A DNA stretch of 63,228 bases, filler included, from Basidiobolus meristosporus CBS 931.73 (Eukaryota; Fungi; Basidiobolomycota): assembly GCA_002104905.1 (NCBI GenBank). It is 3 parts of 3 records of this genome, joined end to end, with 100 filler letters (N's around TTAATTAATTAA, not from the genome) between each part and the next. Parts side by side here need not be neighbours in the genome. Positions count along the whole stretch, not along the records: positions 1 to 27,409 come from MCFE01000904.1; 2 more parts are not named here. One strand, given 5' to 3'. The first letter of the stretch is position 1. The number at the start of each line of letters is the position of its first letter. This document shows positions 1-27,409 of this stretch, piece by piece. Below the pieces are notes generated by a model. The model was not told the origin of the DNA and did no database searches. It saw only the letters and a list, made by a program, of their open reading frames with translations. A program made the translations under genes and the position numbers.

Positions 1-1141
1 GCTTGACACTGTTATGCAAACCATGGTGCAAGCCCAGGTCCATATCTATAGAGAAAGAGCCATGCTGCTTCTGCGCGTGGTGTGCGAGGTATTCTCAGCA
101 ACACATGGGCTGCAGGAGCTAACGATGGAGAATGGCGAAGTAGTAGCAAAGTTTAAAGGGAAGCCAGCTATGCGTAGGAATATAGACGAGCCTCTGGAGA
201 CTTCGCCTGCTTGTGAAGCCTTGACAGCCATTGTGTTTGAACCTAAAGCTAGCACATCCCAAGCTGGTTTGGGCCAATGAATAAATATCCTGTTGCAGAA
301 GGAACAGCGTTGTGTTTTTTAGAATTCACAAAGTGCTATAAAGGTGCGTGCCCAGCGAGGTATAAGGCATTCTCAGGTTGCTTAATCTGTAATACGTATA
401 GATAGTGTGTACGCAGTGTGTATAGATAGATGCACCACGTGACCGGTGTAACTTAAGTATCACAATATAGTGATTAAATAGTATGACGACTCAGCCACAA
501 TTGATTCAACATATTTATACCATAATATTGTATTCACTCCGAATATAAGCATTGGTGAGCGCGATCTAGGCGTAAATAAAGTGTCGTAGTTTCTGTTACA
601 CTGAGGCTATTAGTATTAAGTGCATACATAGTTTGTTCGGGGTATAAGGGTGGATGACAATATTGAGCGGTTACATAAGTATTGCCCATGTGTTCATCCC
701 TTGGTGGTATTGAAAGAATACGATAACCAGTATGTGATTGATAACGTAAAGATACACAAGAGGCATCTTTTGGTTGAGCGGCTAATCTAATATATCATGC
801 TGTTAAGCTTACTATTAATACTGCCATCATCTAAATTATGCAAGATAAAGGCCAATTTTTGAGGCGCTCTTTTGAGGCTCTCGCTGCATTTCTACCCATT
901 TCCGTTTACTAGAGAAATACTAGCCACTTTCTTATAACATAGTATAGGAATCTCTCTACCACGATTAGCATTGCTGTTGACAGAAATCACGTGTTTGTAC
1001 TTATATCATTTATATATATAAGAATCTCTCTGCTATGGCTAGTTTAGTCGCTTATTGCTGTGGAAGACAGAAGGAAAAACGGTTGTATGCTAGCTGCGGC
1101 GCTTATAAATATACTACATTACTCGACTGAGACCCATCAAT

Positions 1142-1154
1142 TTCGTGAAGCTTC
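1142..1154 (+). promoter_or_regulatory. Heat-shock-element-like motif TTCgtGAAgcTTC upstream of family A copy 1
   Basis: Perfect nTTCnnGAAnnTTC triad ~95 bp before the ATG. Also perfect at 6414-6426 and degenerate upstream of the other A copies. Confidence 0.4.
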
Positions 1155-1202
1155 CTAGATACGATGTTTGTTAACCTTCATCTTGGCCGAAAACTGGTTT
1201 TG

Positions 1203-1210
1203 TATATAAA
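1203..1210 (+). promoter_or_regulatory. TATA box (TATATAAA) of family A copy 1
   Basis: 40-47 bp upstream of ATTCACAATG. The same box sits at the same spacing at 9144-9151 and 14256-14263. Confidence 0.65.
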
Positions 1211-1249
1211 TGCTGGTGCTGAGCATTCTTCAAGTAATCAACATTCACA

Positions 1250-1670
1250 ATGTACAAACAACTTACCGCAGCTTGTGCTCTACTAATGGCCGTCAGTGCC
1301 TTTGGAAGTCCCGTGGATGTGTCAAGCACAAATCTCCGATAGGGATCCACAAAGCGGCCAAGTGGTGAAGAAGTTCTCGTCCAACAGGGAAGAGGATGCG
1401 CAGAATATTCGACACTACATCGATGGCATTCTCGGCCAGATGTCAAGGAATACGTTCGATCAGACACTCTCGGATAAGCAAGGAGTCGAGGAAGAGGAGG
1501 GCAATCCTGAAGAGGCCGAGCTATGGGGGAGATCCGGCGGATATGGGCGGCGAAGGGGCAGATACTGGGGACGAGGACGTTACGGTCGTTACGGTGGTTA
1601 TGGAGGTCGGTGGGGATATGGACGCTACGGGGGATATGGAGGGTATGGTGGATGCGACTGGGGTTGCTGA
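1250..1670 (+). pseudogene. Family A secreted GYRW-rich prepropeptide, frameshifted copy (A1)
   Basis: ATG at 1250 (MYKQLTAACALLMAVSAFG). A 17-nt deletion (gtagcgagcgcatccat, present in the 9191 copy) shifts the frame to TAG at 1340-1342. The rest of the gene is near-intact in the ORF-track frame 1296-1670, with a core variant WGRSGG. Confidence 0.9.
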
Positions 1671-1807
1671 GTAAACTCCTTAATAACAAGAATCAAGGCT
1701 TTCATTCACTCCAACAACACCACTTGTCTGTGTGCTTGAATAAAGTACCGTTGCATTTTATCTATTGATAGTGAATGGCCATGTGATTATGACTCTTATT
1801 GAGAATG

Positions 1808-2065
1808 CTAGTTGGCAGAGACTTTCACTGCTTCAACGGTCACTTCTTTTCCGTTGCTTCGAGGTAGTCGCAGCAAACCTGAACCTTTTCCTGTTGCAAT
1901 CTTGCAGAGAAAGGTACAGGATTGCTTTGGCGGAGGGGCTGGGTGGTCCGGGAGTGATGCTTGCGGTATCTACCGTTCCGCAGGTCACGTGCTGGCAAGA
2001 GCTGATATAGATATTCGGGTCAGCAGTGCCACGGTTAAGGAGCAGAGAACGGTATTGAATCGCAT
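1808..2065 (-). pseudogene. Family C secreted-protein pseudogene (C-psi1)
   Basis: Homologous to the intact gene at 7687-8097. Signal-peptide start MRFNTVLCSLTVALL is fused out of frame to exon 2 and stops after 26 codons. Confidence 0.8.
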
Positions 2066-3151
2066 TGTGTGTGTTTCAGCATTGAATTGAATACTGAAGA
2101 GGACTGTATAGAGCTATAAGGGGATAGGAACGGTAGGCAAGGAGAGATAGGTAGAGTTATCATAACAATGAAGGGGAATATTTGATCACTCCTGGGTGTA
2201 TCACCCTTACTTCAGTTTCTAGCCAAGCGAGTCCGTTCCTTGCTACTAAAATCACAAAAAGACTTGAATTACGTGAAGTACGGGTGCTACAACTTTATAG
2301 TATGAGTGGCTTGTTATAGTGTATGTGACTTGGGTTTCTATTTGCTGTAAGTGTAAAACCGGATTGAATGCATGCATATATATTCGTAGAGCGAAATAAC
2401 TCACTGGCTCGTGGTAAAATTTATTCAAAACACAAATCTTTATAGCCTTTCCATTACTGATAGTGGTGGTGAAAGACACGCCCGGTTGGTGCGTAGATAA
2501 GGTGAAAGGCTTTACCAGCTTAGGTATTTATCCCAAGTGACATGTAAGTATTACTGCTTAGTGAAAGGTTGCACGAGGTCGGGCTAGAGACGTGGGGACG
2601 AAACTGGAGAGATACGCGATAAGAGACGGGGATTAAGCCCTATTGAACCGCCATCTCTCCCTACAATGGCTGTCCCTCACCGCCTTCCATACGAGGATTC
2701 TGATTTAACCTCTCGTCTGCCCTACAACACGGATAAGATCTTGTGATCATCTGATCTTTGTGGAGAATATCTTATGAGCGCTTGCTTAATAACCATGATG
2801 GATATGGTAGATAAATGCACTCATGTTGGAGTATCTATCACATGAAGCTGGCAGCATTCTACTTGTCAAGTTATTACTGACTGATACTTATAAGGTTCAT
2901 TGCAGTCACACTCAAAAATTATTATCAGCACCTACGATGAACTTACTTACAAGCAAGCTATATGCACTGTCAGATAAGTACAGAAGTATACTAATTTCTA
3001 TATTATAGCATCCTAACTTTAAGCTTATTTATTCCTCGTTCAGCTGACCTATACTTGAGGATGTATTGCGTAACTGACTAAGAATAAACACTGGAGTTGG
3101 ATGTAGATAGATCGGATCAAGAGATGTTTTAATCAACCGTGCCACTCTTTA

Positions 3152-3421
3152 ATGTATATGAGTTGTGGCAGCAACGGAAGGGGATACGGTGATAGGATAC
3201 ATTGGTACATGGAGATGGCGAATGCCGACCAAGGAGTCGAGGAAGAGGAGGGCAATCCTGAAGAGGCCCAGCTATGGGGGAGATACGGCGGGTATGGGCG
3301 GTGGAGGGGCAGATACTGGGGACGAGGACGTTACGGTCGCTACGGTGGTTATGGAGGTCGGTGGGGATATGGACGCTACGGGAGATATGGAGGGTATGGT
3401 GGATGCGACTGGGGTTGCTGA
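3152..3421 (+). CDS. Leaderless chimeric family A ORF (89 aa); expression uncertain
   Basis: The 3' part (ADQGVEEEEG...CDWGC) is an A gene. The 5' part (up to ~3219) matches non-coding DNA upstream of B genes (cf. 5116-5175). No signal peptide. The core is intact. Confidence 0.45.
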   Translation: MYMSCGSNGRGYGDRIHWYMEMANADQGVEEEEGNPEEAQLWGRYGGYGRWRGRYWGRGRYGRYGGYGGRWGYGRYGRYGGYGGCDWGC

Positions 3422-3525
3422 ATAATAAGAGTCAAGGCTTTCATTCACTCCAGCAACGAATAAAGTACTGTCGCATTTTATCTATCGATAGTGAATGGTC
3501 ATATGTATAACTCTTATTGTAAATG

Positions 3526-3760
3526 CTACTTGGCGGAGACGCCTACTTCTTTTCCGTTATTTGGAAGCAGTCGCAACAATCCTGTTCCTTTTCCTGTTGC
3601 AGTCTTACAGAGAAGGGTACATGATTGCTTTGGCGGAGGTGCTGGATGGTCCAAAAGTGATGCTTGCGGTATCTACCGGTCACGTGTTAGCATGAGCCGA
3701 GGTTGATACGCGGGTTAGCAATGCCACGGTTAAGGAGCAGAGAACGGTATTGAATCGCAC
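3526..3760 (-). pseudogene. Family C pseudogene (C-psi2)
   Basis: Homology to 7687-8097. ATG is mutated to GTG, with internal TGA and TAA stops. Confidence 0.75.
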
Positions 3761-4175
3761 TGTGTGTGTTTTACCGTCAAATCGAATATTAAATACGATT
3801 GTATAGAGCTATAAGGGGATAAGCCCGGTTGGCAAGGAGAGACAGGCAGTGAAGGGGAATATTCTATTAGAGTACTTTTTTCAGTCTTGGGAGTGCGCAT
3901 ATGATGCTAATCCATCATTCTTACTTCAGTTTCTAGCCAAGAGAGCCCATTTCTTGCTACTAGTAACATAAAAAGACTTGAATCACTACAATTTTATCGT
4001 GTGTATGACTTGATATAGTGTGTGTGGCTTGGGTTTCTATACGTAAACAAATGACATAGTTGCTACAAGTGCAAAAGCTGATTAAATGCATGCATATATT
4101 CGTAGAGTGAAATAACTCATTGGAATCTCTATAGTCTTACCGTTAGGCATATGACTGATAGTGGTGGTGAAAGAT

Positions 4176-4219
4176 GATGCCCAGTTGATGCCCCGTTGAT
4201 GCCCCGTTGATGCCCCGTT
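4176..4219. repeat. 11-bp VNTR (GATGCCCCGTT) x4
   Basis: Four tandem units between GAAAGAT and GATGCGTAG. Confidence 0.95.
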
Positions 4220-5441
4220 GATGCGTAGATAAGCCTTTCATACGAGGATTCTGATTCAAAACACGGATTTTTGAGATTTTTCAGCTTTGTGGAGTGTATC
4301 TTTTGAGCGTTTGTTCAATAACCATGATGGCTATGGTAGATAAATACACTCATGTTAGAGTATCTACCGCATCAAGCTACTAGTCAAGTTATTACTTACA
4401 CTCTGATCACTGACTGACACTTAGACCATCATATCTGTGGTGTATAGAAGACCATAAGGTTCATTGTAGTCATTCTCAGCAGAAATACTCTGACCTCAGC
4501 ACTCACTGCTATGAACAGTTCTTCCTTCACTAAAGTCTCAATAGACTGTGATATTGACATGCTGGTATAGGTGATGCATGCTTTGTACAGTTCTCCATGG
4601 TTAAGTGCGGTAGGCCTCTACTTTCTTCATTTTAGACCCCACCAGAACCTTGGCTCGCTTCTAAATCAGTGTCGTACTAGTAGCATTCAGGTGCCATATC
4701 AATTATCGTATATTCTCCACAATATCCCGATATTTGAAGAGCTCATTTGAGATATTCACAAATAAGAATGAAAATGTGATCCTTGAGGCAATAAATGGTT
4801 GTCATTTAGTAACAATGACAGTACTTGAACCGCAACCCCTTCCAATATCAGCTAGCATGAACTTACAACAAGCTGTATGCACTGAGAATATATTAGATAA
4901 GTACACTAATTATTATATTGTCGCAGCCTAACTTGGAGCTTACTGAACCACCGTTAAGCTGAGCTATACACCAAATAAGTATATACTTCAGGATGTACTG
5001 CGGCAGGTTGACTGTATGCATAACCGACTATGATTAAATAATGGAGTTGGCTCAAGAGATGTCATCAACCATGCCGTTCTTTAGTAAATAGGACGATGTA
5101 AGGGGAGTTATGACATCAAAGGAAGGGGATAACGACGCTACAGTGACAGGATATATTGGTACATGGAGATGGCTGCAACTGGAGGTACAGACTCGTCAAC
5201 ACTCGGTTCACACAATCAATATCAACATATCTGCTAAACAAATGATCTTTTTAAGCTTTGAGTTGTGTTATGCGTGTTTGATTGAATGAAGAGCCACTAA
5301 ACAGCTTCTATTGAACGACCATATGGATCACCCGCAGCGCTTCCCACTGAAGGCAGAGGTGAAGTTGAGTGTCTTTAATCAGCTTCTGCTGTGCGGGTAT
5401 ATATATTCATAATCGGCTCGAGTGCTTCATTCAGATTCACA

Positions 5442-5861
5442 ATGTACAAACACTTCTCCATCACCTTTGCTCTCCTAATTGCCTCATGTGCAGTGGCAAT
5501 TCCTGTGCAGCCAGAAGTAACCAATGTAGCAAGTGCTTCCATCTCCATCCGGGACCCACAAAGCGGAAAAATGATAACACAATTCCAATCCACAAAAGAC
5601 GAAGATGCTCGTGCCCTTCTTGACGACATATTCGGTCAAATTTCAGGCGGTGGGTTGGCAAATGAACAAGTATCTCCTACAAGTGAAGACAATGACTCTG
5701 AAGAGGCCGAGCTTTGGGGCAGATATGGTGGCTATGGAAGGTGGGGGAGCAGATACTGGGGACGGGGACGTTACGGTCGCTATGGTGGCTACGGAGGCCG
5801 ATGGGGATATGGGCGCTACGGGGGATATGGTGGCTATGGTGGATGCGACTGGGGTTGCTAA
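5442..5861 (+). CDS. Family B secreted GYRW-rich prepropeptide (B1), 139 aa
   Basis: ATG in the conserved ATTCACAATG context. Hydrophobic signal MYKHFSITFALLIASCAVA, acidic linker, core LWGRYGGYGRWGSRYW...GGCDWGC. TATATA upstream and AATAAA downstream. Confidence 0.9.
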   Translation: MYKHFSITFALLIASCAVAIPVQPEVTNVASASISIRDPQSGKMITQFQSTKDEDARALLDDIFGQISGGGLANEQVSPTSEDNDSEEAELWGRYGGYGRWGSRYWGRGRYGRYGGYGGRWGYGRYGGYGGYGGCDWGC

Positions 5862-6060
5862 TACACTACATCCTTACGTTAAATAAACATCATAATGTCA
5901 ATGCTTCAATCTAAACCTCATCGCAATTAATAGAAGCCGCTCAGTGATGCTTACCAAGCTGCGGTAGGGAGAGAAAGTCAGATATGTGTATAGATAAGGT
6001 GGATGTCTAGGCAAAGATAAGTCTTATTGCAGTTTGGCAGTCGATTATCTTCCTAAATGG

Positions 6061-6130
6061 TGCCAATCTTTACCTTCAAATGCTGACAATTTTTATCTTC
6101 AATGCTGTCAATCTTTACTTTTCAATGGTG
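6061..6130. repeat. Three imperfect ~23-bp direct repeats in the B-A intergenic region
   Basis: Unit ~CAATYTTTAYCTTYAATGC repeated three times. Also present at ~14016-14085. Confidence 0.7.
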
Positions 6131-6491
6131 TGCTGTTAGTAAAGTGATTTTTTTCGCTTCATATTTGCCTAATCTTCCATGAATGCCGTCTATAGCTTTC
6201 TTATATTCATGTGGTGCTGTCGACCTGGACTGTACGAACCATTTTACTTTACGTTCTGCTTTCTAGAGTATCTAATGGTCTGACTACTACTAATATGACG
6301 ATTAATTAGTATATACTCATGGTGACACTATTCTAGAGGCTCTTATTGTATCTTCCTAATGCCTGTAGAATAGATGCAAAATATAATATATCGTTCGTCC
6401 GAAACCCATCAATTTCGCGAAGCTTCCTAGATGTGATGTCTATAAACCTCCATCTTGGCCAAAAGCTGTATTGAAGTATTCAACATTCACA

Positions 6492-6941
6492 ATGTACAAA
6501 CAACTTACCGCAGCCTGTGCTCTACTAATGGTCGTCAGTGCCTTTGGAGCTCCCGTGGATGTGTCAAACACAAATGTAGCGAGCGCATCCATCTCTGATA
6601 GGGACCCACAAAGCGGCCAAGTGGTGAAGAAGTTCTCGTCCAACAGGGAGGAGGATGCGCAGAATATTCGACACTACATCGATGGCATTCTCGGCCAGAT
6701 GTCAAGGAATACGTTTGATCAGACTCTCTCGAGCAAGCAAGGCGCCGATCAAGGAGTTGAGGAAGAGGAGGGCAATCCAGAAGAGGCCGAGCTATGGGGT
6801 AGATACGGCGGATATGGGCGTCGGAGGGGCAGATACTGGGGACGAGGACGTTACGGTCGCTACGGTGGTTATGGAGGTCGGTGGGGGTATGGACGCTACG
6901 GGGGATATGGAGGGTATGGTGGATGCGACTGGGGTTGCTGA
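6492..6941 (+). CDS. Family A secreted GYRW-rich prepropeptide (A3), 149 aa
   Basis: Intact ORF from the ATG at 6492 (the ORF track extends it to an upstream TTG). Signal peptide, pro-domain, EEEEG linker and CDWGC core are all present. Confidence 0.9.
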   Translation: MYKQLTAACALLMVVSAFGAPVDVSNTNVASASISDRDPQSGQVVKKFSSNREEDAQNIRHYIDGILGQMSRNTFDQTLSSKQGADQGVEEEEGNPEEAELWGRYGGYGRRRGRYWGRGRYGRYGGYGGRWGYGRYGGYGGYGGCDWGC

Positions 6942-7070
6942 GTAAACTCCTTAATAACAAGAATCAAGGCTTTCATTCACTCCAACAACACCACTTGTCT
7001 GTGTGCTTGAATAAAGTACCGTTGCATTGTATCTATCGATAGTGAATGGCCATGTGATTATGACTCTTAT

Positions 7071-7351
7071 TTAGAGTGATAGCTGGCAGAGACCCTCACT
7101 GCTCCAAAGGTCACTTCTTTTCCGTTCTTCGCGATGTGTGTCTCGGGTTGTTTGGAGGTAATCGTAGCAATCCTGTTCCTTTTCCTGTTGCAATCTTGCA
7201 GAGAAGGGTACGGGATCGCTTTGGCGGAGGTGCTGGGCGGTCCGGAAGTGATGCTTGCGGTATCTACCGGTCACGTGTTGGCATGAGCCGAGGCTGGTAT
7301 GCAGGTTAGCAGTGCCACGGTTAAGGAGCAGAGAACGGTTTTGTATCGCAT
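7071..7351 (-). pseudogene. Family C pseudogene (C-psi3) with restored frame and one internal TGA
   Basis: Reads MRYKTVLCSLTVALLTCIPASAHANT*PVDTASITSG...GAVRVSASYHSK. An 8-nt deletion puts the exon-2 sequence back in frame behind a single TGA. Confidence 0.75.
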
Positions 7352-7686
7352 TGTGTGTGTTTCACCGTTGAATCGAATACTGAAGAGGACTGTATAGAGC
7401 TATAAGGAGATAAGCACGGTTGGCAAGGAGAGACAGGCAGAGCTACCATAACAATGAAGGGGAGCATCACCCTTACTTCAGTTTCTAGCTAAGAGAGCCC
7501 GTTCCTTGCTACTAGTATCGCCACGGTGGATACACTCCATTCATCTTTTGCTCAGAATGATGTGTAGGCATATTCTAGGCTTTCGTTCACTAGTCTGTTA
7601 CAGTTGCTCTTTCATTCTGGCTGTGTATATCTAATGGGATGCATTCTTTATCACTCCTGGCTAAACAATGCGGTTTATTGAGGATG

Positions 7687-8097
7687 CTAGCTGACAGATA
7701 CTCTTACTGCTCCAACAGTCACTTCTTTTCCGTTCTTCGCGATAGGCACCTCGAGTTGTTTGGATGTTATAGCAGCTATCCTGTTCCTGCGATTGTAACA
7801 ATCTTGCAGAGAAGGATACAGGACGGCTTGAGCAGAGGTACTGGGAGATTCAGGGGTGATGCTGGAGTAGGTCACACGTTGGCATGAGCCAGCCGAGAAT
7901 GGTAGTTGTTGTGCAGTATCTTCAGGAGTATTCACCAACTCTACATTGTAAGTATTTGGTTAGTAAGGCTCACTGGTTGCGGCTAGTTGGGTTATATACT
8001 GATACATACTTAGTAACGCACTAGAGGATTGTGCTGAAGTTGTCGTGCCGGCTAGTAGTGCCATGGTCAAGGAGCAGAAAACGGTACTGAATCGCAT
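7687..8097 (-). CDS. Family C small secreted protein, 113 aa, two exons (8097-8010 and 7940-7687), not called by the ORF track
   Basis: Exon 1 encodes MRFSTVFCSLTMALLAGTTTSAQSSSALL. The 69-nt intron (8009-7941) has GTATGT, a TACTAAC branch point (7965-7959) and TAG. Splicing joins exon 1 in frame to the 83-aa ORF 7938-7687. Confidence 0.85.
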
Positions 8098-8756
8098 TGT
8101 GTGTGCCTCTGTGTGTATGCCTGATGAATAAGGTGAACATTACAAGCGATTTTATAGGAAATTAGCCCGGCTTGTAAGGAGAGACAGGCTGAGCTACCAT
8201 GATGAAGCGGAATATTCTTTATTATTCACCAAATTCGCTTTGGGCTAAGCACTTTTTTTAAAGGAGAAACCATCGAACTCAAGTGATGATCCTTGTATTG
8301 TTCGATGACTAGTGTTAGCCTGCATATGTGGCATGGATGCGTTGCCTGCTCGCTTCCATTAGTATCGTAACGCCGAATATGGTGAGTGCGATCTAGGCGT
8401 AAATAAAGTGTTGTAGTTTCTGTTACACTGAGGCTTTAAATTTTGAGTGCATGCTTAGTATATAGGCATTGCCCATTTGTAGCCCACTCATTCATCTCCT
8501 GATGAAGGAATCAGATGGTGGTGATGACTTCTGGTGAAGAACGGCAAATGGTGGTGGTCAAAGAAAAAGATGACCAGTATGGGATTGATAACGTAAAATA
8601 TACACGAGGGGAGGCTCCGTTTATTCTTTGGTGTTCACCATGCGCAAGTACTTTTCCATCGCTCTAATACTTTTTAATGTGACAAGTGTGTCCATCTCTT
8701 CTCCAAAGTCGGGAAACGGTGTGTAGGAAGAAGGTGCTCGCACCAGAGAGGGCAGG

Positions 8757-8830
8757 TGACGAGGTCGTTATGGTCACTTCGGGGACTATGATGGTCGCTG
8801 GGAACTTGGAGGGTTTGCTTGAGCTGCTAA
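8757..8830 (+). pseudogene. Relic of an older, diverged GYRW-core paralogue
   Basis: Reads *RGRYGHFGDYDGRWELG, collinear with GRGRYGRYGGYGGRWGYG, and ends in ...CTGCTAA like the B genes. Confidence 0.55.
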
Positions 8831-9190
8831 TTTAATACATCATGCTGTTAAGCTTACTACTAATATTGCGATCATCCACAACTCTAAATCATGCAAAATA
8901 AATGCCAATTTTTGAGGCTCTCTTTTGAGGCTCTCGCTGTTTATCTACCCATTTCCGTTTACGAGATAAACACTTGCCACTTTCATATAACATAGTATAG
9001 AAATCTCTATACCACGACTAGTGTTGTTGTTAACAGAAATCGAGTGTTTGTACTTTGGCTGCGGTGGTTGCCTCCGAAATATACTACATCATTTGACTGA
9101 AGCTTCCTAGATGCGATATCAATCAACCTCCATCTTGTATGTGTATATAAAGACTGGTGCTGAGCTTTATTTGAGTATTCAACATTCACA

Positions 9191-9640
9191 ATGTACAAAC
9201 AACTTACCGCAGCTTGTGCTCTACTAGTGGCCGTCAATGCCTTTGGAAGTCCCGTGGATGTGTCAAGCACAAATGTAGCGAGCGCATCCATCTCCGATAG
9301 GGATCCACAAAGTGGCCAAGTGGTGAAGAGGTTCTCGTCCAACAAGGAGGAGGATGCGCAGAATATTCGACACTACATCGATGGCATTCTCGGCCAGATG
9401 TCAAGAAATACGTTCGATCAGACCCTCTCGGATAAGCAAGACGCCGACCAAGATGTCGAGGAAGAGGAGGGCAATCCAGAAGAGGCCCAGCTATGGGGGA
9501 GATACGGTGGATATGGGCGGCGGAGGGGCAGATACTGGGGACGAGGACACTACGGTCGCTACGGTGGTTATGGAGGTCGATGGGGATATGGACGCTACGG
9601 GGGATATGGATGGTATGGTGGATGCGACTGGGGTTGCTAA
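9191..9640 (+). CDS. Family A secreted GYRW-rich prepropeptide (A4), 149 aa
   Basis: Intact ORF with TATA box at 9144-9151. Core variants GRGH and GWY. Confidence 0.9.
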   Translation: MYKQLTAACALLVAVNAFGSPVDVSSTNVASASISDRDPQSGQVVKRFSSNKEEDAQNIRHYIDGILGQMSRNTFDQTLSDKQDADQDVEEEEGNPEEAQLWGRYGGYGRRRGRYWGRGHYGRYGGYGGRWGYGRYGGYGWYGGCDWGC

Positions 9641-9768
9641 ATAATAAGAATCAAGGCTTTCATTCCACTCCAACAACACAGACTTGTCTAGTGTGCTTGA
9701 ATAAAGTACCGTTGCATTGTATCTATCGATAGTGAATGGCCATGTGATTATGACTCTTATTGAGAATG

Positions 9769-10037
9769 CTAGTTGGCAGAGACTCTCACTGCTCCAACGG
9801 TCACTTCTTTTCCGTACTTCGCGATGTGTATCTCGAATTGTTTAGAGGTAATTGTAGCAGTCCTGTTCCTTTTACAGTTGCAATCTTGCAGGGAAGGGTA
9901 CAGGATTACTTTGGCGGAGGTGCTGGGTGGACCGGAAGTGATGCTTGTGGTATCTACCGGTTTGCAGGTCACGTGTTGACATGAGCTGATGTTGACACGC
10001 TGGTTAGCAGTGCCACGGTTAAGGAGTAGAGAACGGG
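9769..10037 (-). pseudogene. Family C pseudogene (C-psi4), 5'-truncated
   Basis: The exon-2-like frame is open (ORF 9769-9972). The start region is lost at ~10037. Confidence 0.75.
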
Positions 10038-11259
10038 GCTAGGGTTTATTTATCACATCAAGCTGGCAGCATTCTACTTGCCAAGTTATTACTGACTGAT
10101 ACTTATATAGACGATCATAAGGTTCATTGTAGTCATACCCAAAATATTATTATCTCTTCAGTATTCTCAACAGCAGTGCAGCGGCCTCAGCACTTGCTGT
10201 TATGAACAGTTTCCTTCACAGGTATGGCTAAAGTCTCAATATACTAAGACATTGGCATGCTGGCATAGGTGATGCAGGCTTTGTACGGCGCTCCAGCTGT
10301 CTTTCAGAGAGGCTCCTACTGCTTAGCTGATTACAGCACACTAGCATAAATAGGCCATGTTTAATCATTATTTCTTGGTACTCGTAGAAAATACCAACAC
10401 GTGACTTGCTTTGTACTCCCACTGCAGGTAGCTACCAGATATACAATTGTACTGCATAGGACTCTACTTCGTATAGTAATTTGGTGTTATTTTGAACACT
10501 GATAAGCAAGAGTAGGAACTCTCCATTGCTTTAAAGCTACTGGTAAAACATAAGCTCAGTAAACTTGTTCTAGGCAGCATTCCAACTCATATTTTCGCAA
10601 TAAATAACCTTGTAGCATATAGAATGGTGCTGATAGCTCCTTGATCCATACTGTTGGCTATTGGAGTGAGCAGACTTTGTAGTGGAGTTAGCCTGCAGTA
10701 GGGATTTTGAACTTACATTGACTCCTTGGTGAGCAGTTCTTTATGTAGTTGATGATTGAAAGTTACTTACAGGCTGCCCAGGTGCAATAGGCCTCTGCTT
10801 TCCTCATTTAAATATCACCAGAACCCTTGGTTTACTGGACACTTCTGAACCAGTATTGCACTATCAGCTTCAGGTACCATATCAAGTGCCAAACATTCTT
10901 CACAATGCTTTAATATTTGAGATATTTACAACAGGCACTATATAACTAAGAATGAAAAAGTAGTAGCCCGAATACTTGAGGCAGCTATCATTATTTGAGC
11001 CGCAATCCCTGCCAATATTACCTACAATGAACTTACTTACAAGCAAGCTATAAGCACTGTTAGATAAGTACAGAAGTATACTAATTTCTATATTATAGCA
11101 TCCTAACTTTAAGCTTATTTATTCCTCGTTCAGCTGACCTATACTTGAGGATGTATTGCGGCAGGTTGACTGTATGCGTAACCGACTAGGAATAAACACT
11201 GGAGTTGGATGTAGCTAGATCGGATCAAGAGATGTTTTAATCAACCGTGCCACTCTTTA

Positions 11260-11511
11260 ATGAATATGAGTTGTGGCAGCAACGGAAGGGGATACGGTGA
11301 TAGGATACATTGGTACATGGAGATGGCGAATGCCGACCAAGGAGTCGAGGAAGAGGAGGGCAATCCTGAAGAGGCCGAGCTATGGGGGAGATACGGCGGG
11401 TATGGGCCGTGGAGGGGCAGATACTGGGGACGAGGACGTTACGGTCGTTACGGTGGTTATGGAGGTCTGTGGGAATATGGAGGCTATGGTGGATGCGACT
11501 GGGGTTGCTGA
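11260..11511 (+). CDS. Leaderless chimeric family A ORF (83 aa), degenerating
   Basis: Same fusion junction as 3152-3421. The core has an in-frame deletion and R>P, R>L and G>E changes. Confidence 0.35.
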   Translation: MNMSCGSNGRGYGDRIHWYMEMANADQGVEEEEGNPEEAELWGRYGGYGPWRGRYWGRGRYGRYGGYGGLWEYGGYGGCDWGC

Positions 11512-11670
11512 ATAAACTCCTTACTAATAAGAGTCAAGGCTTTCGTTCACTCCAGCAACGCAGCTTTTCTGTGTGCTTGAATAAAGTACTGTCGCATTTT
11601 GTCTATCGATAGTGAATGGCCCTGAGTATAATTCGATGGGATGTATTCTTTATAACTCTTGTCGTGAATG

Positions 11671-11913
11671 CTAGTTAGCAGAGACCCCTACTTCTTTTCG
11701 GTTATTTGGAGGTACTCGCAACAATCCTGTTCCTTTTCCTGTTGCAATCTTACAGAGAAGGGTACATTATTGCTTTGGCGGAGGTGCTGGATGGTCCGGA
11801 AGTGATGCTTGCGGTATCTACCGGTCTGCAGGTCACGTGTTGGCATGAGCCGAGTTTGATACGCGGGTTAGCAGTGCCACGGTTAAGGAGCAGAGAACGG
11901 TATTGAATCGCAC
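11671..11913 (-). pseudogene. Family C pseudogene (C-psi5)
   Basis: GTG start, frameshift and two CAA>TAA stops relative to the intact C gene. Confidence 0.75.
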
Positions 11914-12258
11914 TGTGTGTGTTTTACCGTTAAATCGAATATTAAATACGATTGTATAGAGCTATAAGGAGATAGGCACTGTTGGCAAGGAGAGACAGGC
12001 AGAATTACCATGACAATGAAGGGGAGTATTCTATTAGAGTACTTTTTTCAGTCTTGGGAGTACGCATATGATTACTTCAGTTTCTAGCCAAGAGAGCCCG
12101 TTCCTTGCTACTAGTAACATAGAAAGACTTCAAAACGTCATAGTTGCTATAAGCGCAAACCTGATTGAATGCATGCATATAATCGTAGAGTGAAATAACT
12201 CATTGAAATCTCTATAGTCTTACCGTTGGGCATATGACTGATAGTGGTGGTGAAAGAT

Positions 12259-12291
12259 GATGCCCAGTTGATGCCCCGTTGATGCCCCGTT
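12259..12291. repeat. 11-bp VNTR x3
   Basis: Same unit and flanks as 4176-4219. Confidence 0.95.
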
Positions 12292-13418
12292 GATGCGTAG
12301 ATAAGCCTTTCATACGAGGATTCTGATTCAAATACGTCTGCCTCAAACACGGATTTTGACCAGGACAAGACCTTGTGACCATCTGAGCTTTGTGGAGTGT
12401 ATCTAACCATGACGGCTATGGTAGATAAATACACTCATGCTGGAGTATCTATCACATCAGTACTATCATTACTTACACTCTGATCACTGACTGACACCTA
12501 CACCATCATATCTTTGGTGTATAGAAGATCATAAGGTTTGTCGTAGTCATTTTCACAGAACCATTATCTCCTCAGTATTCTCAGCAGAAATACTCTGACC
12601 TCAGCACTCACTGCTATGAGCAGTTCTTCCTTCACTAAATATCAAGTACCCTATATTCTCCACAATATCAAGTACCCTATATTCTCCACAATATCCCAAT
12701 ATTTGAAGATATTTGCAACAGATACTGTACAACTAAGAATGAAAATGGAATGCTTGAGGCTATCAATGGTTGTCATTTAGTAATAATGATCGCAGCTAGT
12801 TCTCAGTGCTTGAACCGCAGCCCCTTCCAATATCAGCTAGCATGAACTTACAACAAGCTATATGCACTGAGAATCTATTCGATAAGTACACTAATTTTTA
12901 TATTATCGCAGCCTAACTTGGAGCTTACTAATTCCGCTTACCATACACCGACCAAGTATATTCTTCAGGATTTACTGCGGTAGGTTAACTGTATGTGTAA
13001 CCGACTGGGAAGAAATACTGGAGTTATCTCAAGAGATGTCATTAATCATGCCATTCTTTAGTAAATATGATGATATAAAGGGAGTTATGGCATCAACGGA
13101 AGGGGATAACGACGCTACAGTGACAGGATACATTGGTACATGGAGATGGCTGCAACTGGAAGTTCACACAATCAATATCAACATATGGCTAACCTGCAAC
13201 ATATCTGCTAAACAAATGATCTTGTGAAGCTTTTCGTTGTGTTATGCGTGTTTGATTGAATGAAGAGCCACTAAACAGTTTCTATTGAACGATCGTATGG
13301 ATCACCCGCAGCGCTTCTCACTGAAGGCAGAGGTAAAGTTGAGTGTCTTTAATAAGCTCCATCATCAGCTTCTGCTATGCGGGTATATATACTCATAATC
13401 AGCTCATTCAGATTCACA

Positions 13419-13838
13419 ATGTACAAGCACCTCTCCATCCCCTTTGCTCTCCTAATTGCCTCATATGCAGTGGCAACTCCTGTGCAGCCAGAAGCAACCA
13501 ATGTAGCAAGTGCTTCCATCTCCATCCGGGACCCACAAAGCGGCAAAATGATAACACAATTCCAATCCGCAAAAGACGAAGATGCTCGCGCCATTCTTGA
13601 CGACATATTCGGCCAAATGTCAGGCGGTGGGTTGGCAGATGAAGAAGTGTCTCCTACAAGTGAAGACACTGACTCTGAAGAGGCCGAGCTTTGGGGTAGA
13701 TATGGTGGCTATGGAAGGTGGGGGAGCAGATACTGGGGACGAGGACGTTACAGTCGCTATGGTGGCTACGGAGGCCGATGGGGATATGGGCGTTACGGGG
13801 GATATGGTGGCTATGGTGGATGCGACTGGGGTTGCTAA
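13419..13838 (+). CDS. Family B secreted GYRW-rich prepropeptide (B2), 139 aa
   Basis: Intact ORF from the ATG at 13419. Close paralogue of B1. Confidence 0.9.
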   Translation: MYKHLSIPFALLIASYAVATPVQPEATNVASASISIRDPQSGKMITQFQSAKDEDARAILDDIFGQMSGGGLADEEVSPTSEDTDSEEAELWGRYGGYGRWGSRYWGRGRYSRYGGYGGRWGYGRYGGYGGYGGCDWGC

Positions 13839-14302
13839 TGCACTACATCCTTACGTTTAATAAATATCATAATGACAATGCTCATCGTAATTAATCAGTG
13901 ATGTTTACCAAGCTGCAGTATGGAGAGAAAGTCGGATATGTGTATGGATAAGGTGGATGTCTAGGCAAAGATAAGTCTTATTGCAGTTTGGCTGTCAATT
14001 ATCTTCATAAATGGTGCCAATCTTTACCTTTAAATGCGGTCAATTTTTACCTTCAATGCTGTCAATTTTTACCTTTTAATGGTGTACTGTTAGTAGTCAT
14101 TTTTTTTCGCATGATAACACTACTCTAGAAGCTCTTATTGTATCTTCCTAATGCCTGTAGAATAGATGCAAAATATAATATATCGTTCGTCCGAAACCCA
14201 TCGATTCCGTGAAGCTTCCTAGATGCGATATCAATCAACCTCGATCTTGTATCTGTATATAAAGGCTGGTGCTGAGCTTTATTGGAGTATTCAACATTCA
14301 CA

Positions 14303-14752
14303 ATGTACAAACAACTTACCGCAGCTTGTGCTCTACTAATGGTCGTCAGTGCCTTTGGAAGTCCCGTAGATGTGTCAAGCACAAATGTAGCGAGCGCATC
14401 CATCTCCGATAAGAACCCGCAAAGCGGTCAAATGGTGAAGAAGTTCTCGTCCAACAAGGAAGAGGATGCGCAGAATATTCGACACTACATCGATGGCATT
14501 CTCGGCCAGATGTCGAGGAATACGTTTGATCAGACTATCTCGAGCAAGCAAGGCGCCGACCAAGGAGTCGAGGAAGAGGAGGGCAATCCTGAAGAGGCCC
14601 AGCTATGGGGGAGATACGGTGGATATGGGCGGCGAAGGGGCAGATACTGGGGACGAGGAGGTTACGGTCGCTACGGTGGTTATGGAGGTCGGTGGGGATA
14701 TGGACGCTACGGGGGATATGGAGGGTATGGTGGATGCGACTGGGGTTGCTGA
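14303..14752 (+). CDS. Family A secreted GYRW-rich prepropeptide (A6), 149 aa
   Basis: Intact ORF from the ATG at 14303, with TATA box at 14256-14263. Confidence 0.9.
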   Translation: MYKQLTAACALLMVVSAFGSPVDVSSTNVASASISDKNPQSGQMVKKFSSNKEEDAQNIRHYIDGILGQMSRNTFDQTISSKQGADQGVEEEEGNPEEAQLWGRYGGYGRRRGRYWGRGGYGRYGGYGGRWGYGRYGGYGGYGGCDWGC

Positions 14753-14880
14753 ATAATAACAAGGATCAAGGCTTTCATTCACTCCAACAACACAGCTTGT
14801 CTGTGTGCTTGAATAAAGTATCGTTGCATTTTATCTATCGATAGTGAATGGCCATGTGATTATGACTCCTATTGAGAATG

Positions 14881-15138
14881 CTAGTTAGCAGAGACTCTCA
14901 CTGCTCCAACGGTCACTTCTTTTCCGTAGTTTCGAGGTAATCGCAGCAAACCTGAACCTTTTCCTGTTGCAATCTTGCAGAGAAAGGTACAGGATTGCTT
15001 TGGCGGAGGTGCCGGGTGGTCCGGAAGTTATGCCTACGGTGTCCAATGGCCCGGCAGTCACGTGTTGCCATGAGCCAAGGTTGATACGCAGGTTGGCAGT
15101 ACCATGTTTAAGGAGGAGAGAACGGTATTGAGTCGTAT
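14881..15138 (-). pseudogene. Family C pseudogene (C-psi6)
   Basis: Homology to family C. The start codon is lost (ATA). Confidence 0.7.
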
Positions 15139-15409
15139 TGTGAGTACTTCACCGTTGAATCGAATATTAAAGAAGATTGTGTAGAGCCATAAGGGGATAT
15201 GCAGAGTTACTAAGATAATGAAGGGGAATAATATACAACTTTATCGTGTGTATGACTTGTTATAGTGTGTGTGGCTTGGGTTTCGATACGTAAACAAATG
15301 GCATAGTTGCTTTGATTGAATGCATGCATATAATCGTAGAGTGAAATAACTCATTGAAATCTCTATAGTCTTACCGTTGGGCATATAACTGATAGTGGTG
15401 GTGAAAGAT

Positions 15410-15616
15410 GATGCCCCGTTGATGCCCCGTTGATGCCCCGTTGATGCCCCGTTGATGCCCCGTTGATGCCCCGTTGATGCCCGTTGATGCCCCGTTGATG
15501 CCCCGTTGATGCCCCGTTGATGCCCCGTTGATGCCCCGTTGATGCCCGTTGATGCCCCGTTGATGCCCCGTTGATGCCCCGTTGATGCCCCGTTGATGCC
15601 CCGTTGATGCCCCGTT
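15410..15616. repeat. 11-bp VNTR, ~19 units
   Basis: 17 units of 11 bp plus 2 of 10 bp. Confidence 0.95.
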
Positions 15617-16842
15617 GATGCGTAGATAAGCCTTTCATACGAGGATTCTGATTCAAAATCGTCTGCCTCAAAACACGGATTTTGACCAGGACAAGATCTT
15701 GTGACCATCTGAGCTTTGTGGAGTGTATCTAACCATGACGGCTATGGTAGATAAATACACTCATGATGAAGTATCTATCACATCAAGCTACTAGTCAAGT
15801 TATTACTTACACTCTGATCACTGACTGACACTTACACCATCATATCTCTGGTGTATAGAAGACCATAAGGTTCATTGTAGTCATTCTCAGCAGAAATACT
15901 CACTTACTGCTATTCCCAACTCTTCCTTCACAGGTATGGCTGAAGTCTCAATATACTGAGAGATTGGCAGGCTTTGTACAGTACTCCAGCAGTCTTTCGG
16001 AGATGCTTTCACTATTCAGCTCACTACAGCACACTAAGCCTAAACATGACATCAGCCAAGCAACAAGCATTATTTCTTGGTACTCATAGTAAATTCCAAC
16101 ACATGACTTGCTTTGTATTCCCACTTCAGGTAGCTATAGGATATACATAAGACTCTGCTTCATACAGTATGTTGGTGCTATGTTGACTATTGCTAAGTGA
16201 ATATATGCTCTACTGGTAAAATATAAAGTCGGTAAACTTATTCCTGTCCGCACAATAGATACCTTTGTAGCCTAAAGCATGTTGGTGGACTTTGTGGTAT
16301 ATGTTTTCTACAATGTCCTAATATTTGAACACGCTTGCTACAACTCATTGGAGATATTCACAAATGAGACTATACAACTAAAAATGATCACTTAATAAAT
16401 GGACGTTGTTTGATAAGAATCCTTCAATACTTGAACCAGCTTATACGAATATCAAACGAACTATATGCACTACAAGGGAATATATTATACAAGTACAGAA
16501 GTACAATAATCGTTATATTTCGTATACCACCGTTCAGCTGAGCTATACACTGACTCCATATATACTTCAGGGCGTGCTGTGGCATGAGTAACCGGCTAGG
16601 AATAAATACTGGAGTTAGATGTAACTAGATAGGTTTATCAAGCTCCATCATCATTCCATTCCTGAAGACACCGACTCTGATGGCAGCAACGGAAGGAGAT
16701 TAGGACGCTACGTTTCTGGGGCACATTGGGACATGGAGATGGCTGCAACTGGAGTCAAAATATGGTCCACACAATCAATAGCGGTATCCTCAATATGTGG
16801 CTAATATGTACAATCCGCTCAACTCCTTCATTCAGATTCAAA

Positions 16843-17294: not shown

Positions 17295-17491
17295 GATGCC
17301 GTGATGCCCGTTGATGCCCGTTGATGCCCGTTGATGCCCCGTTGATGCCCCGTTGATTTGATGCCCCGTTGATGCCCCGTTGATGCCCCGTTGATGCCCC
17401 GTTGATGCCCCGTTGATGCCCCGTTGATGCCCCGTTGATGCCCCGTTGATGCCCCGTTGATGCCCCGTTGATGCCCCGTTGATGCCCCGTT
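17295..17491. repeat. 11-bp VNTR, ~18 irregular units
   Basis: Duplicated VNTR with several short or broken units. Confidence 0.9.
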
Positions 17492-18717
17492 GATGCGTAG
17501 ATAAGCCTTTCATACGAGGATTCTGATTCAAAATCGTCTGCCTCAAAACACGGATTTTGACCAGGACAAGATCTTGTGACCATCTGAGCTTTGTGGAGTG
17601 TATCTAACCATGACGGCTATGGTAGATAAATACACTCATGATGAAGTATCTATCACATCAAGCTACTAGTCAAGTTATTACTTACACTCTGATCACTGAC
17701 TGACACTTACACCATCATATCTCTGGTGTATAGAAGACCATAAGGTTCATTGTAGTCATTCTCAGCAGAAATACTCACTTACTGCTATTCCCAACTCTTC
17801 CTTCACAGGTATGGCTGAAGTCTCAATATACTGAGAGATTGGCAGGCTTTGTACAGTACTCCAGCAGTCTTTCGGAGATGCTTTCACTATTCAGCTCACT
17901 ACAGCACACTAAGCCTAAACATGACATCAGCCAAGCAACAAGCATTATTTCTTGGTACTCATAGTAAATTCCAACACATGACTTGCTTTGTATTCCCACT
18001 TCAGGTAGCTATAGGATATACATAAGACTCTGCTTCATACAGTATGTTGGTGCTATGTTGACTATTGCTAAGTGAATATATGCTCTACTGGTAAAATATA
18101 AAGTCGGTAAACTTATTCCTGTCCGCACAATAGATACCTTTGTAGCCTAAAGCATGTTGGTGGACTTTGTGGTATATGTTTTCTACAATGTCCTAATATT
18201 TGAACACGCTTGCTACAACTCATTGGAGATATTCACAAATGAGACTATACAACTAAAAATGATCACTTAATAAATGGACGTTGTTTGATAAGAATCCTTC
18301 AATACTTGAACCAGCTTATACGAATATCAAACGAACTATATGCACTACAAGGGAATATATTATACAAGTACAGAAGTACAATAATCGTTATATTTCGTAT
18401 ACCACCGTTCAGCTGAGCTATACACTGACTCCATATATACTTCAGGGCGTGCTGTGGCATGAGTAACCGGCTAGGAATAAATACTGGAGTTAGATGTAAC
18501 TAGATAGGTTTATCAAGCTCCATCATCATTCCATTCCTGAAGACACCGACTCTGATGGCAGCAACGGAAGGAGATTAGGACGCTACGTTTCTGGGGCACA
18601 TTGGGACATGGAGATGGCTGCAACTGGAGTCAAAATATGGTCCACACAATCAATAGCGGTATCCTCAATATGTGGCTAATATGTACAATCCGCTCAACTC
18701 CTTCATTCAGATTCAAA

Positions 18718-27210: not shown

Positions 27211-27409
27211 TTAGGGTTAGGGTTAGGGTTAGGGTTAGGGTTAGGGTTAGGGTTAGGGTTAGGGTTAGGGTTAGGGTTAGGGTTAGGGTTAGGGTTAGGT
27301 TAGGGTTAGGGTTAGGGTTAGGGTTAGGGTTAGGGTTAGGGTTAGGGTTAGGGTTAGGGTTAGGGTTAGGGTTAGGGTTAGGGTTAGGGTTAGGGTTAGG
27401 GTTAGGGTT
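27211..27409 (+). repeat. Telomeric repeat (TTAGGG)~33 at the contig end
   Basis: 199 bp of TTAGGG, G-rich strand facing the end, with one TTAGG variant near 27295. Followed directly by the N spacer. Confidence 0.97.

Follow-up and report, generated by a model that had tools for sequence, protein, structure and literature searches.

Among the peptide genes at one contig end of Basidiobolus meristosporus CBS 931.73 lies a small two-exon gene on the minus strand, here called the C gene. The locus raises the question of whether its product is a dedicated secreted partner of these peptides or a protein that acts by itself and came to lie among them by duplication. The neighboring A and B genes code for precursors in which a signal peptide and an acidic pro-region are followed by about 48 C-terminal residues rich in Gly, Tyr, Arg and Trp (hence GYRW) that end in C-D-W-G-C. 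The window, that is, the whole stretch of DNA analyzed, comprises 63,228 nucleotides, filler included, and consists of three parts from three records of assembly GCA_002104905.1, the first of which (positions 1 to 27,409) is contig MCFE01000904.1. Positions refer to this stretch unless another locus is named. We consider it likely that the C gene is a real, constrained gene for a secreted protein of crystallin-like fold that acts alone, and that it stands beside the GYRW genes through segmental duplication.

Structure and constraint of the C gene

The gene and its flanking motifs read as follows:

8097-8010, minus strand: C gene exon 1, 88 nt, with the ATG at 8097 (window sequence and match to the deposited protein)
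8009-7941, minus strand: C gene intron, 69 nt, phase 1, with 5' GTATGT, a branch-like TACTAAC and 3' TAG
7940-7687, minus strand: C gene exon 2, 254 nt, with the stop codon TAG at 7689-7687
8156-8150, minus strand: TATAAAA, 53-59 nt 5' of the ATG, a possible TATA box (sequence reading)
7679-7674, minus strand: AATAAA, 8 nt 3' of the stop codon, a possible polyadenylation signal (sequence reading)

The predicted splice joins exons 1 and 2 into a single open frame of 113 codons plus stop, in line with the sequence-only reading of this DNA, which had described a two-exon minus-strand gene with a 69-nt intron. The protein proposed there is the spliced product, and this is identical to P0001, deposited in GenBank as K493DRAFT_342978 of B. 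meristosporus CBS 931.73 and located on MCFE01000904.1 (27,409 bp). The gene had also been described as hidden; it is indeed missing from a prokaryote-style ORF list, but GenBank already calls it as a hypothetical protein, so that the result is in this respect a modest one. Among the C-like copies of the window, the intact gene (C4) is the only one that GenBank calls.

Exon 1 codes for the putative signal peptide (approximately residues 1-22) and the first mature residues, and exon 2 for the remainder of a single domain, predicted to be beta-gamma-crystallin-like, with the conserved C49, Y71, D76, C77, RRNRI and GAVRV. The N-terminus has a hydrophobic core at residues 3-16 (mean Kyte-Doolittle value up to 2.3) followed by T-S-A, which fits a signal peptide, from these features presumably cleaved near residue 22, and agrees with the secreted product expected earlier. 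The start context, acacaATG, does resemble that of the A and B genes (ttcacaATG), as had been pointed out, but CACAATG, which is what they have in common, is present at 13 places in the window and is presumably an ordinary fungal start context. Being generic, it argues against rather than for a special relationship between the two kinds of gene.

The intron can be followed beyond this contig. A paralogue on MCFE01000688.1 (locus L001, 9968-10394) has a 70-nt intron of the same position and phase; it is deposited as a 107-residue protein starting at an internal Met (P0002), and from an ATG 33 nt upstream it reads as 118 residues with a full signal peptide, like the C gene of the window. In B. 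ranarum, an intron interrupts both the orthologue P0003 (66% identity; intron of 69 nt) and P0019 (intron of 60 nt), in each case after nt 88 and in phase 1, and the sequences of these introns are unrelated to that of the C gene despite the common position and phase. The protein P0025 of the chytrid Borealophlyctis has a phase-1 intron at most two aligned codons away from the same place. The splice, as predicted, is supported by this comparison across species.

Further intact copies of 118 residues are found on MCFE01000610.1 (locus L007, 5935-6361) and MCFE01000866.1 (locus L008, 2695-3121), so that intact copies beyond the window lie on three other contigs, that of the paralogue included. 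Between the C gene and the paralogue dN/dS is 0.19 (Nei-Gojobori; 13 synonymous and 8 non-synonymous changes), and the same method gives dN of 0.23-0.33 against B. ranarum, where synonymous sites are saturated. The copy in the window may nevertheless have been weakened: it lacks 15 nt, corresponding to five residues of a conserved FGPVD-TA loop that is kept in every other intact copy and in B. ranarum, and it forms the longest branch of the intact clade in the tree (0.059 versus at most 0.016). It could be read as a decaying paralogue on its way to becoming a pseudogene within an otherwise functional family, given that the in-frame deletion strikes F-G-x-x-D-x-A, which most chytrid domains keep, and that six dead copies lie nearby. 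We regard such decay as unlikely, because the frame, the start codon, the splice signals and the TATA-like and AATAAA motifs are all intact, the pairwise dN/dS is low, and the deletion falls in a lower-confidence segment of the structural model (pLDDT of about 60), outside the well-predicted strands.

The protein family and its predicted fold

An exhaustive profile search recovered 10 family members at E <= 0.001, and a second search, word-indexed and using the family profile, found no further members. They are distributed as follows:

Basidiobolus ranarum: three proteins
Basidiobolus meristosporus: one mis-annotated relic
Phlyctochytrium bullatum: 720 aa, four domains
Dinochytrium kinnereticum: 301 aa, two domains
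Borealophlyctis nickersoniae: two proteins
Olpidium bornovanus: one protein
Environmental sequence: one protein

The domain thus occurs singly or in two to four tandem copies in Basidiobolus, Olpidium and chytrids, and the full-length proteins begin with a hydrophobic leader. In an alignment of 15 domains, there is hardly any variation at the two cysteines, Y71 and D76, and the core motifs are LY-x-S-L-x-D-C-x-x-R-R-N-R-I and V-G-A-V-R-V. The cysteine and LY pattern that had been singled out in the one sequence is therefore a property of the family, with both cysteines and the LY motif almost unchanged. The two near-invariant cysteines probably form a C49-C77 disulfide.

Named families offered no counterpart. 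The C protein matched no Pfam family at E <= 1; the 15 domains gave nothing relevant against Pfam at E <= 10, none of them matching PF00030, PF03995 or PF09117, and the family profile had no match among PDB sequences at E <= 10. Membership of any named sequence family is accordingly not supported by these searches, and the C family is an unnamed secreted family of early-diverging fungi, new at the level of sequence and of a known structural kind.

This structural kind was recognized in an AlphaFold2 model of the mature protein built on the 15-domain family alignment (pLDDT 71, pTM 0.63), which is all-beta with one short helix; with only three close homologues the model was unusable (pLDDT 42.7). 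An exhaustive comparison with 48,161 PDB representatives gave 24 chains with Z >= 5, about 20 of them of beta-gamma-crystallin type, aligned over 71-82 of the 90 residues. The scores of individual matches were:

Geodin: Z 7.0
Beta-B3: Z 6.8
AIM1: Z 6.8
Protein S: Z 6.4-6.5
Ciona crystallin: Z 6.2
WmKT killer toxin: Z 6.2
MiAMP1: Z 5.9
Spherulin 3a: Z 5.9
Neurospora APP: Z 5.9
IPSE: Z 5.7
Nitrollin: Z 5.6
SKLP: Z 4.1

The best Foldseek matches were gamma-crystallins and IPSE (probability 0.95-1.0, E of about 0.05), and in the ESM Atlas the model resembled Inhibitor_I36, Crystall and MiAMP1 clusters as well as unnamed Dikarya clusters (TM 0.65-0.70). The beta-gamma-crystallin-like fold is a domain of about 80-90 residues in which two Greek-key motifs form a beta-sandwich, and at the level of fold the predicted C model has what places a protein in this superfamily. 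The comparisons support, on a model of moderate confidence, that the C domain of about 90 residues is such a double Greek-key sandwich, the case resting on the uniformity of the match list, as the individual scores are middling (Z 5-7, Foldseek E of about 0.05). The earlier suggestion of a crystallin or killer-toxin-like fold, for which AlphaFold and Foldseek had been named as the check, is thus favored by predicted structure, with crystallin-type matches dominating.

The sequence hallmarks of the classical proteins are absent. In classical beta-gamma-crystallins, each Greek key shows the signature Y/F/W-x-x-x-x-Y/F-x-G together with a Ser that is conserved. Across the 15 aligned C domains, neither the aromatic residues nor the Gly of this signature are conserved in the first half; in the second half the first Tyr (Y71) alone remains, and it is followed by a conserved D-C in place of the aromatic residue. 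In microbial calcium-binding crystallins, the last strand of each Greek key is preceded by an N/D-N/D-x-x-S/T-S motif; all 15 C domains lack it, the corresponding stretches reading G-S-C-Q-R-V and V-T-V-G-A-V-R-V. These observations bear on the idea that the C protein is a calcium-binding structural crystallin of the spore or cell wall, of the type of Protein S, spherulin 3a or Neurospora APP. All three are indeed among the fold matches, and the chytrid members are multi-domain proteins with Pro-rich linkers, as would suit wall-associated proteins. Nevertheless, with the calcium motif missing from both halves of the domain throughout the family, the Y/F-x-x-x-x-Y/F-x-G signature not kept and no match to the Pfam Crystall family, we hold a structural role of this kind to be very unlikely.

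Relics and segmental duplication in a subtelomeric array

Nine GYRW coding stretches lie in the window between 1296 and 19700, several of them truncated or broken. Examples are:

5442-5861: GYRW coding stretch
6492-6941: GYRW coding stretch
9191-9640: GYRW coding stretch
13419-13838: GYRW coding stretch
14303-14752: GYRW coding stretch

The search for homologues gave matches in B. meristosporus alone, spread over at least 10 contigs, and the peptides have no match in Pfam. Their products look like precursors of cationic glycine-rich antimicrobial peptides, and the Gly-rich peptide is likely disordered; a literature search found no paper on glycine-rich antimicrobial peptides of Basidiobolus.

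The sequence-only reading had placed a homologue of the C gene tail-to-tail behind every A-type copy but one (A7). C-like DNA does lie in this arrangement behind six A-type genes, but none of the six copies is intact, and all are pseudogene relics:

1808-2065, minus strand: C1 relic, with the shared deletion and a 23-nt deletion
3545-3759, minus strand: C2 relic, GTG in place of ATG, with stop codons and three deletions (the shared one, 8 nt and 23 nt)
7080-7351, minus strand: C3 relic, with the shared deletion, another deletion of 8 nt, and an in-frame TGA at the junction
9769-10036, minus strand: C5 relic, no start codon, with the shared deletion
11671-11912, minus strand: C6 relic, GTG in place of ATG, with a stop codon and two deletions (the shared one and 23 nt)
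14881-15138, minus strand: C7 relic, ATA in place of ATG, with the shared deletion and a 23-nt deletion

The shared deletion, of about 145 nt, runs from the last part of exon 1 through the entire intron into the beginning of exon 2; it takes away 76 coding nt and shifts the frame. The 23-nt deletion is common to C1, C2, C6 and C7, the 8-nt deletion occurs in C2 and C3, and in-frame stops are found in C2, C3 and C6. The C3 relic is the one that directly follows the intact C gene on its 3' side; the A gene to which it stands tail-to-tail is that at 6492-6941. A tree built on the 3' part common to all copies separates the relics, as one clade, from the intact copies, which group with B. ranarum, and this split has a support of 1.0. 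The simplest reading of these sequences is that the relics descend from one copy that lost 145 nt, died and was carried along by the amplification of the A genes.

Two other ways of looking at the short copies were considered. An insertion of the 145-nt segment into C4 was ruled out, because the homologues of B. ranarum and chytrids possess the segment, which was therefore deleted from the relics. Nor can the short copies be genes with a different intron: the sole GT...AG pair at the junction would give an intron of about 20 nt, which is too short, and the lost start codons, the stops and the 8-nt and 23-nt deletions also speak against it.

The cluster as a whole is repetitive. A higher-order repeat of about 8 kb extends over positions 1-16000, with repeat families recurring every 7954-8108 nt; each unit contains A, truncated A, B and A genes together with C relics, and the intact C gene is present in the first unit only. 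The gene order of the window recurs on other B. meristosporus contigs, and C introns are near-identical between clusters; by this comparison, the GYRW/C clusters are segmental duplicates of each other. The contig ends in about 33 tandem copies of the telomere-type repeat TTAGGG (27211-27409), so that the whole cluster is subtelomeric, a place that fits rapid amplification and decay.

Several further features of the array were seen. An 11-nt minisatellite, TGATGCCCCGT, is present in up to 19.5 copies (15409-15621, 17302-17496 and 4175-4224) within an element of about 1.9 kb that is itself repeated, and it gives rise to spurious minus-strand ORFs with repetitive translations. Between 20000 and 27200 the GC content drops to 36-39%, and no convincing gene or cluster repeat was seen between the last GYRW remnant (at about 19.6 kb) and the telomere repeat. 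Three GenBank models look like artefacts, namely a 162-aa model (P0020) that uses an upstream ATG, out of frame, to read a C relic, a 117-aa model that begins in a partial C copy, and a 123-aa model spliced across two A-type remnants; the artefact-like models are found at these places:

L001 12613-13283: artefact-like GenBank model
L001 14006-14675: artefact-like GenBank model
Window 1317-3624: artefact-like GenBank model

A protein acting alone or a partner of the GYRW peptides

The arrangement had suggested a two-component secreted system, in which the C protein would be a dedicated and co-regulated partner of the GYRW peptides, whether as carrier, chaperone, immunity factor or co-toxin. The geometry is indeed regular: all four intact C copies of B. 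meristosporus lie inside GYRW clusters, each of them in divergent orientation to one A gene at a distance of some 1.1 kb and with an A gene and its relic downstream of it, both kinds of gene code for secreted products, and the intact C copies are under purifying selection. However, as the clusters are segmental duplicates, this linkage counts as approximately one observation. Moreover, the numbers do not run in parallel, since about 91 kb from five B. meristosporus loci hold 26 GYRW coding stretches and only 4 intact C genes, the rest being 3 broken or partial copies of the full structure and about 21 relics, which are dead.

The distribution of the two families points in the same direction. 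The C family is present in B. ranarum, Olpidium and chytrids, where no GYRW homologues were found, and by this comparison it exceeds the GYRW family in age and in breadth of distribution. No GYRW coding stretch is present beside the C homologues at L002 (3.5 kb) and L005 (3.2 kb), both of B. ranarum, or at L004, a chytrid contig of 20.5 kb; the homologue at L002 adjoins a bHLH-like gene and that at L005 a NUDIX-like gene. The co-occurrence check that had been proposed for other genomes thus gave C homologues free of a GYRW neighbor at three of three loci, a result that is suggestive, two of the three contigs being only 3.2-3.5 kb long, and conserved co-occurrence or linkage across genomes was not found within these lengths. 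C homologues unlinked to GYRW genes elsewhere had been named beforehand as an outcome that would refute the partnership, and by this criterion the linkage in B. meristosporus looks like hitch-hiking. With the supposed partner copies turning out to be relics, the C family wider than the GYRW family, and C loci elsewhere unlinked, the two-component system is not borne out, and we consider a dedicated partnership improbable. We give equally little credence to a functional link peculiar to the B. meristosporus lineage, and to its more specific form, in which a crystallin-fold protein would have been recruited to a subtelomeric antimicrobial arsenal alongside the cationic GYRW peptides, as co-toxin, carrier or means of self-protection.

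For a C protein acting alone, we propose the following sequence of events. The gene would make a 113-aa precursor with a signal peptide, followed by a domain of about 90 residues that would fold as a double Greek-key sandwich and, once secreted, serve by itself as a stable binding module. Segmental duplication in the subtelomeric array would have put the gene among the GYRW genes, where an early copy may have lost 145 nt and then been carried, dead, with the amplifying A genes, while about one intact copy per cluster would have been kept by purifying selection.

As to what such a module might do, the crystallin-like fold is known to recur among proteins secreted by fungi, in killer toxins and in antimicrobial proteins of plants. 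The nearest analogues among the latter kinds, WmKT of Williopsis mrakii (1wkt), SKLP of Streptomyces (1f53) and MiAMP1 of Macadamia (1c01), resemble the C protein in being secreted single domains of about 80-90 residues with an all-beta, disulfide-stabilized double Greek key, which on the C side is predicted, and the C model aligns with them over 70-76 residues (Z 6.2, 4.1 and 5.9, respectively). In contrast, there is no detectable sequence similarity, and WmKT and MiAMP1 have more disulfides than the two conserved cysteines of the C family would give. The domain also shares its predicted fold with the peptidase inhibitors I36 (SMPI-type, PF03995; Inhibitor_I36 cluster, TM 0.65) and with the PF00030 crystallins (Protein S, geodin, spherulin 3a, APP), but differs from both in having no Pfam match at E <= 10, no Greek-key aromatic/Gly signature and no calcium-binding motif. 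Small secreted members of this fold include a killer toxin (WmKT), an antimicrobial protein (MiAMP1) and a protease inhibitor (I36), and B. meristosporus is a fungus of animal guts and dung. In view of the activities of these relatives and of this habitat, an antimicrobial, killer-toxin-like or inhibitor role seems the most plausible for the C protein by analogy of fold, and it is most likely a stable extracellular binding module that acts on its own.

A further parallel comes from the gamma-crystallin-like effector candidates of Dikarya, such as Magnaporthe cluster 14 and Cladosporium fulvum Ecp4/7/29/30, which are small, secreted and diverse in sequence and were recognized by predicted fold alone (PMC9447291; PMC13525658). 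Members of the C family are likewise small secreted fungal proteins recognized only by their predicted fold, and the structural neighbors of the C model in the Atlas include unnamed clusters of Ascomycota and Basidiomycota (TM 0.69-0.70). Unlike those candidates, to which they are alike by fold only, they come from early-diverging fungi that are not plant pathogens and have tandem multi-domain forms in chytrids.

For clusters of this kind, our results offer an ordinary account of repeated "partner" copies, in which one dead copy would have been carried along by the amplification of peptide genes near a telomere. If the recruitment to an antimicrobial arsenal were nevertheless true, it would be the reason for which one working C copy is retained per amplified peptide cluster. 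All together, if the predicted model is right, the C family brings chytrids, Olpidium and Basidiobolus into the range of the beta-gamma-crystallin-like fold class, and the C protein would be a testable candidate for an antimicrobial protein or inhibitor.
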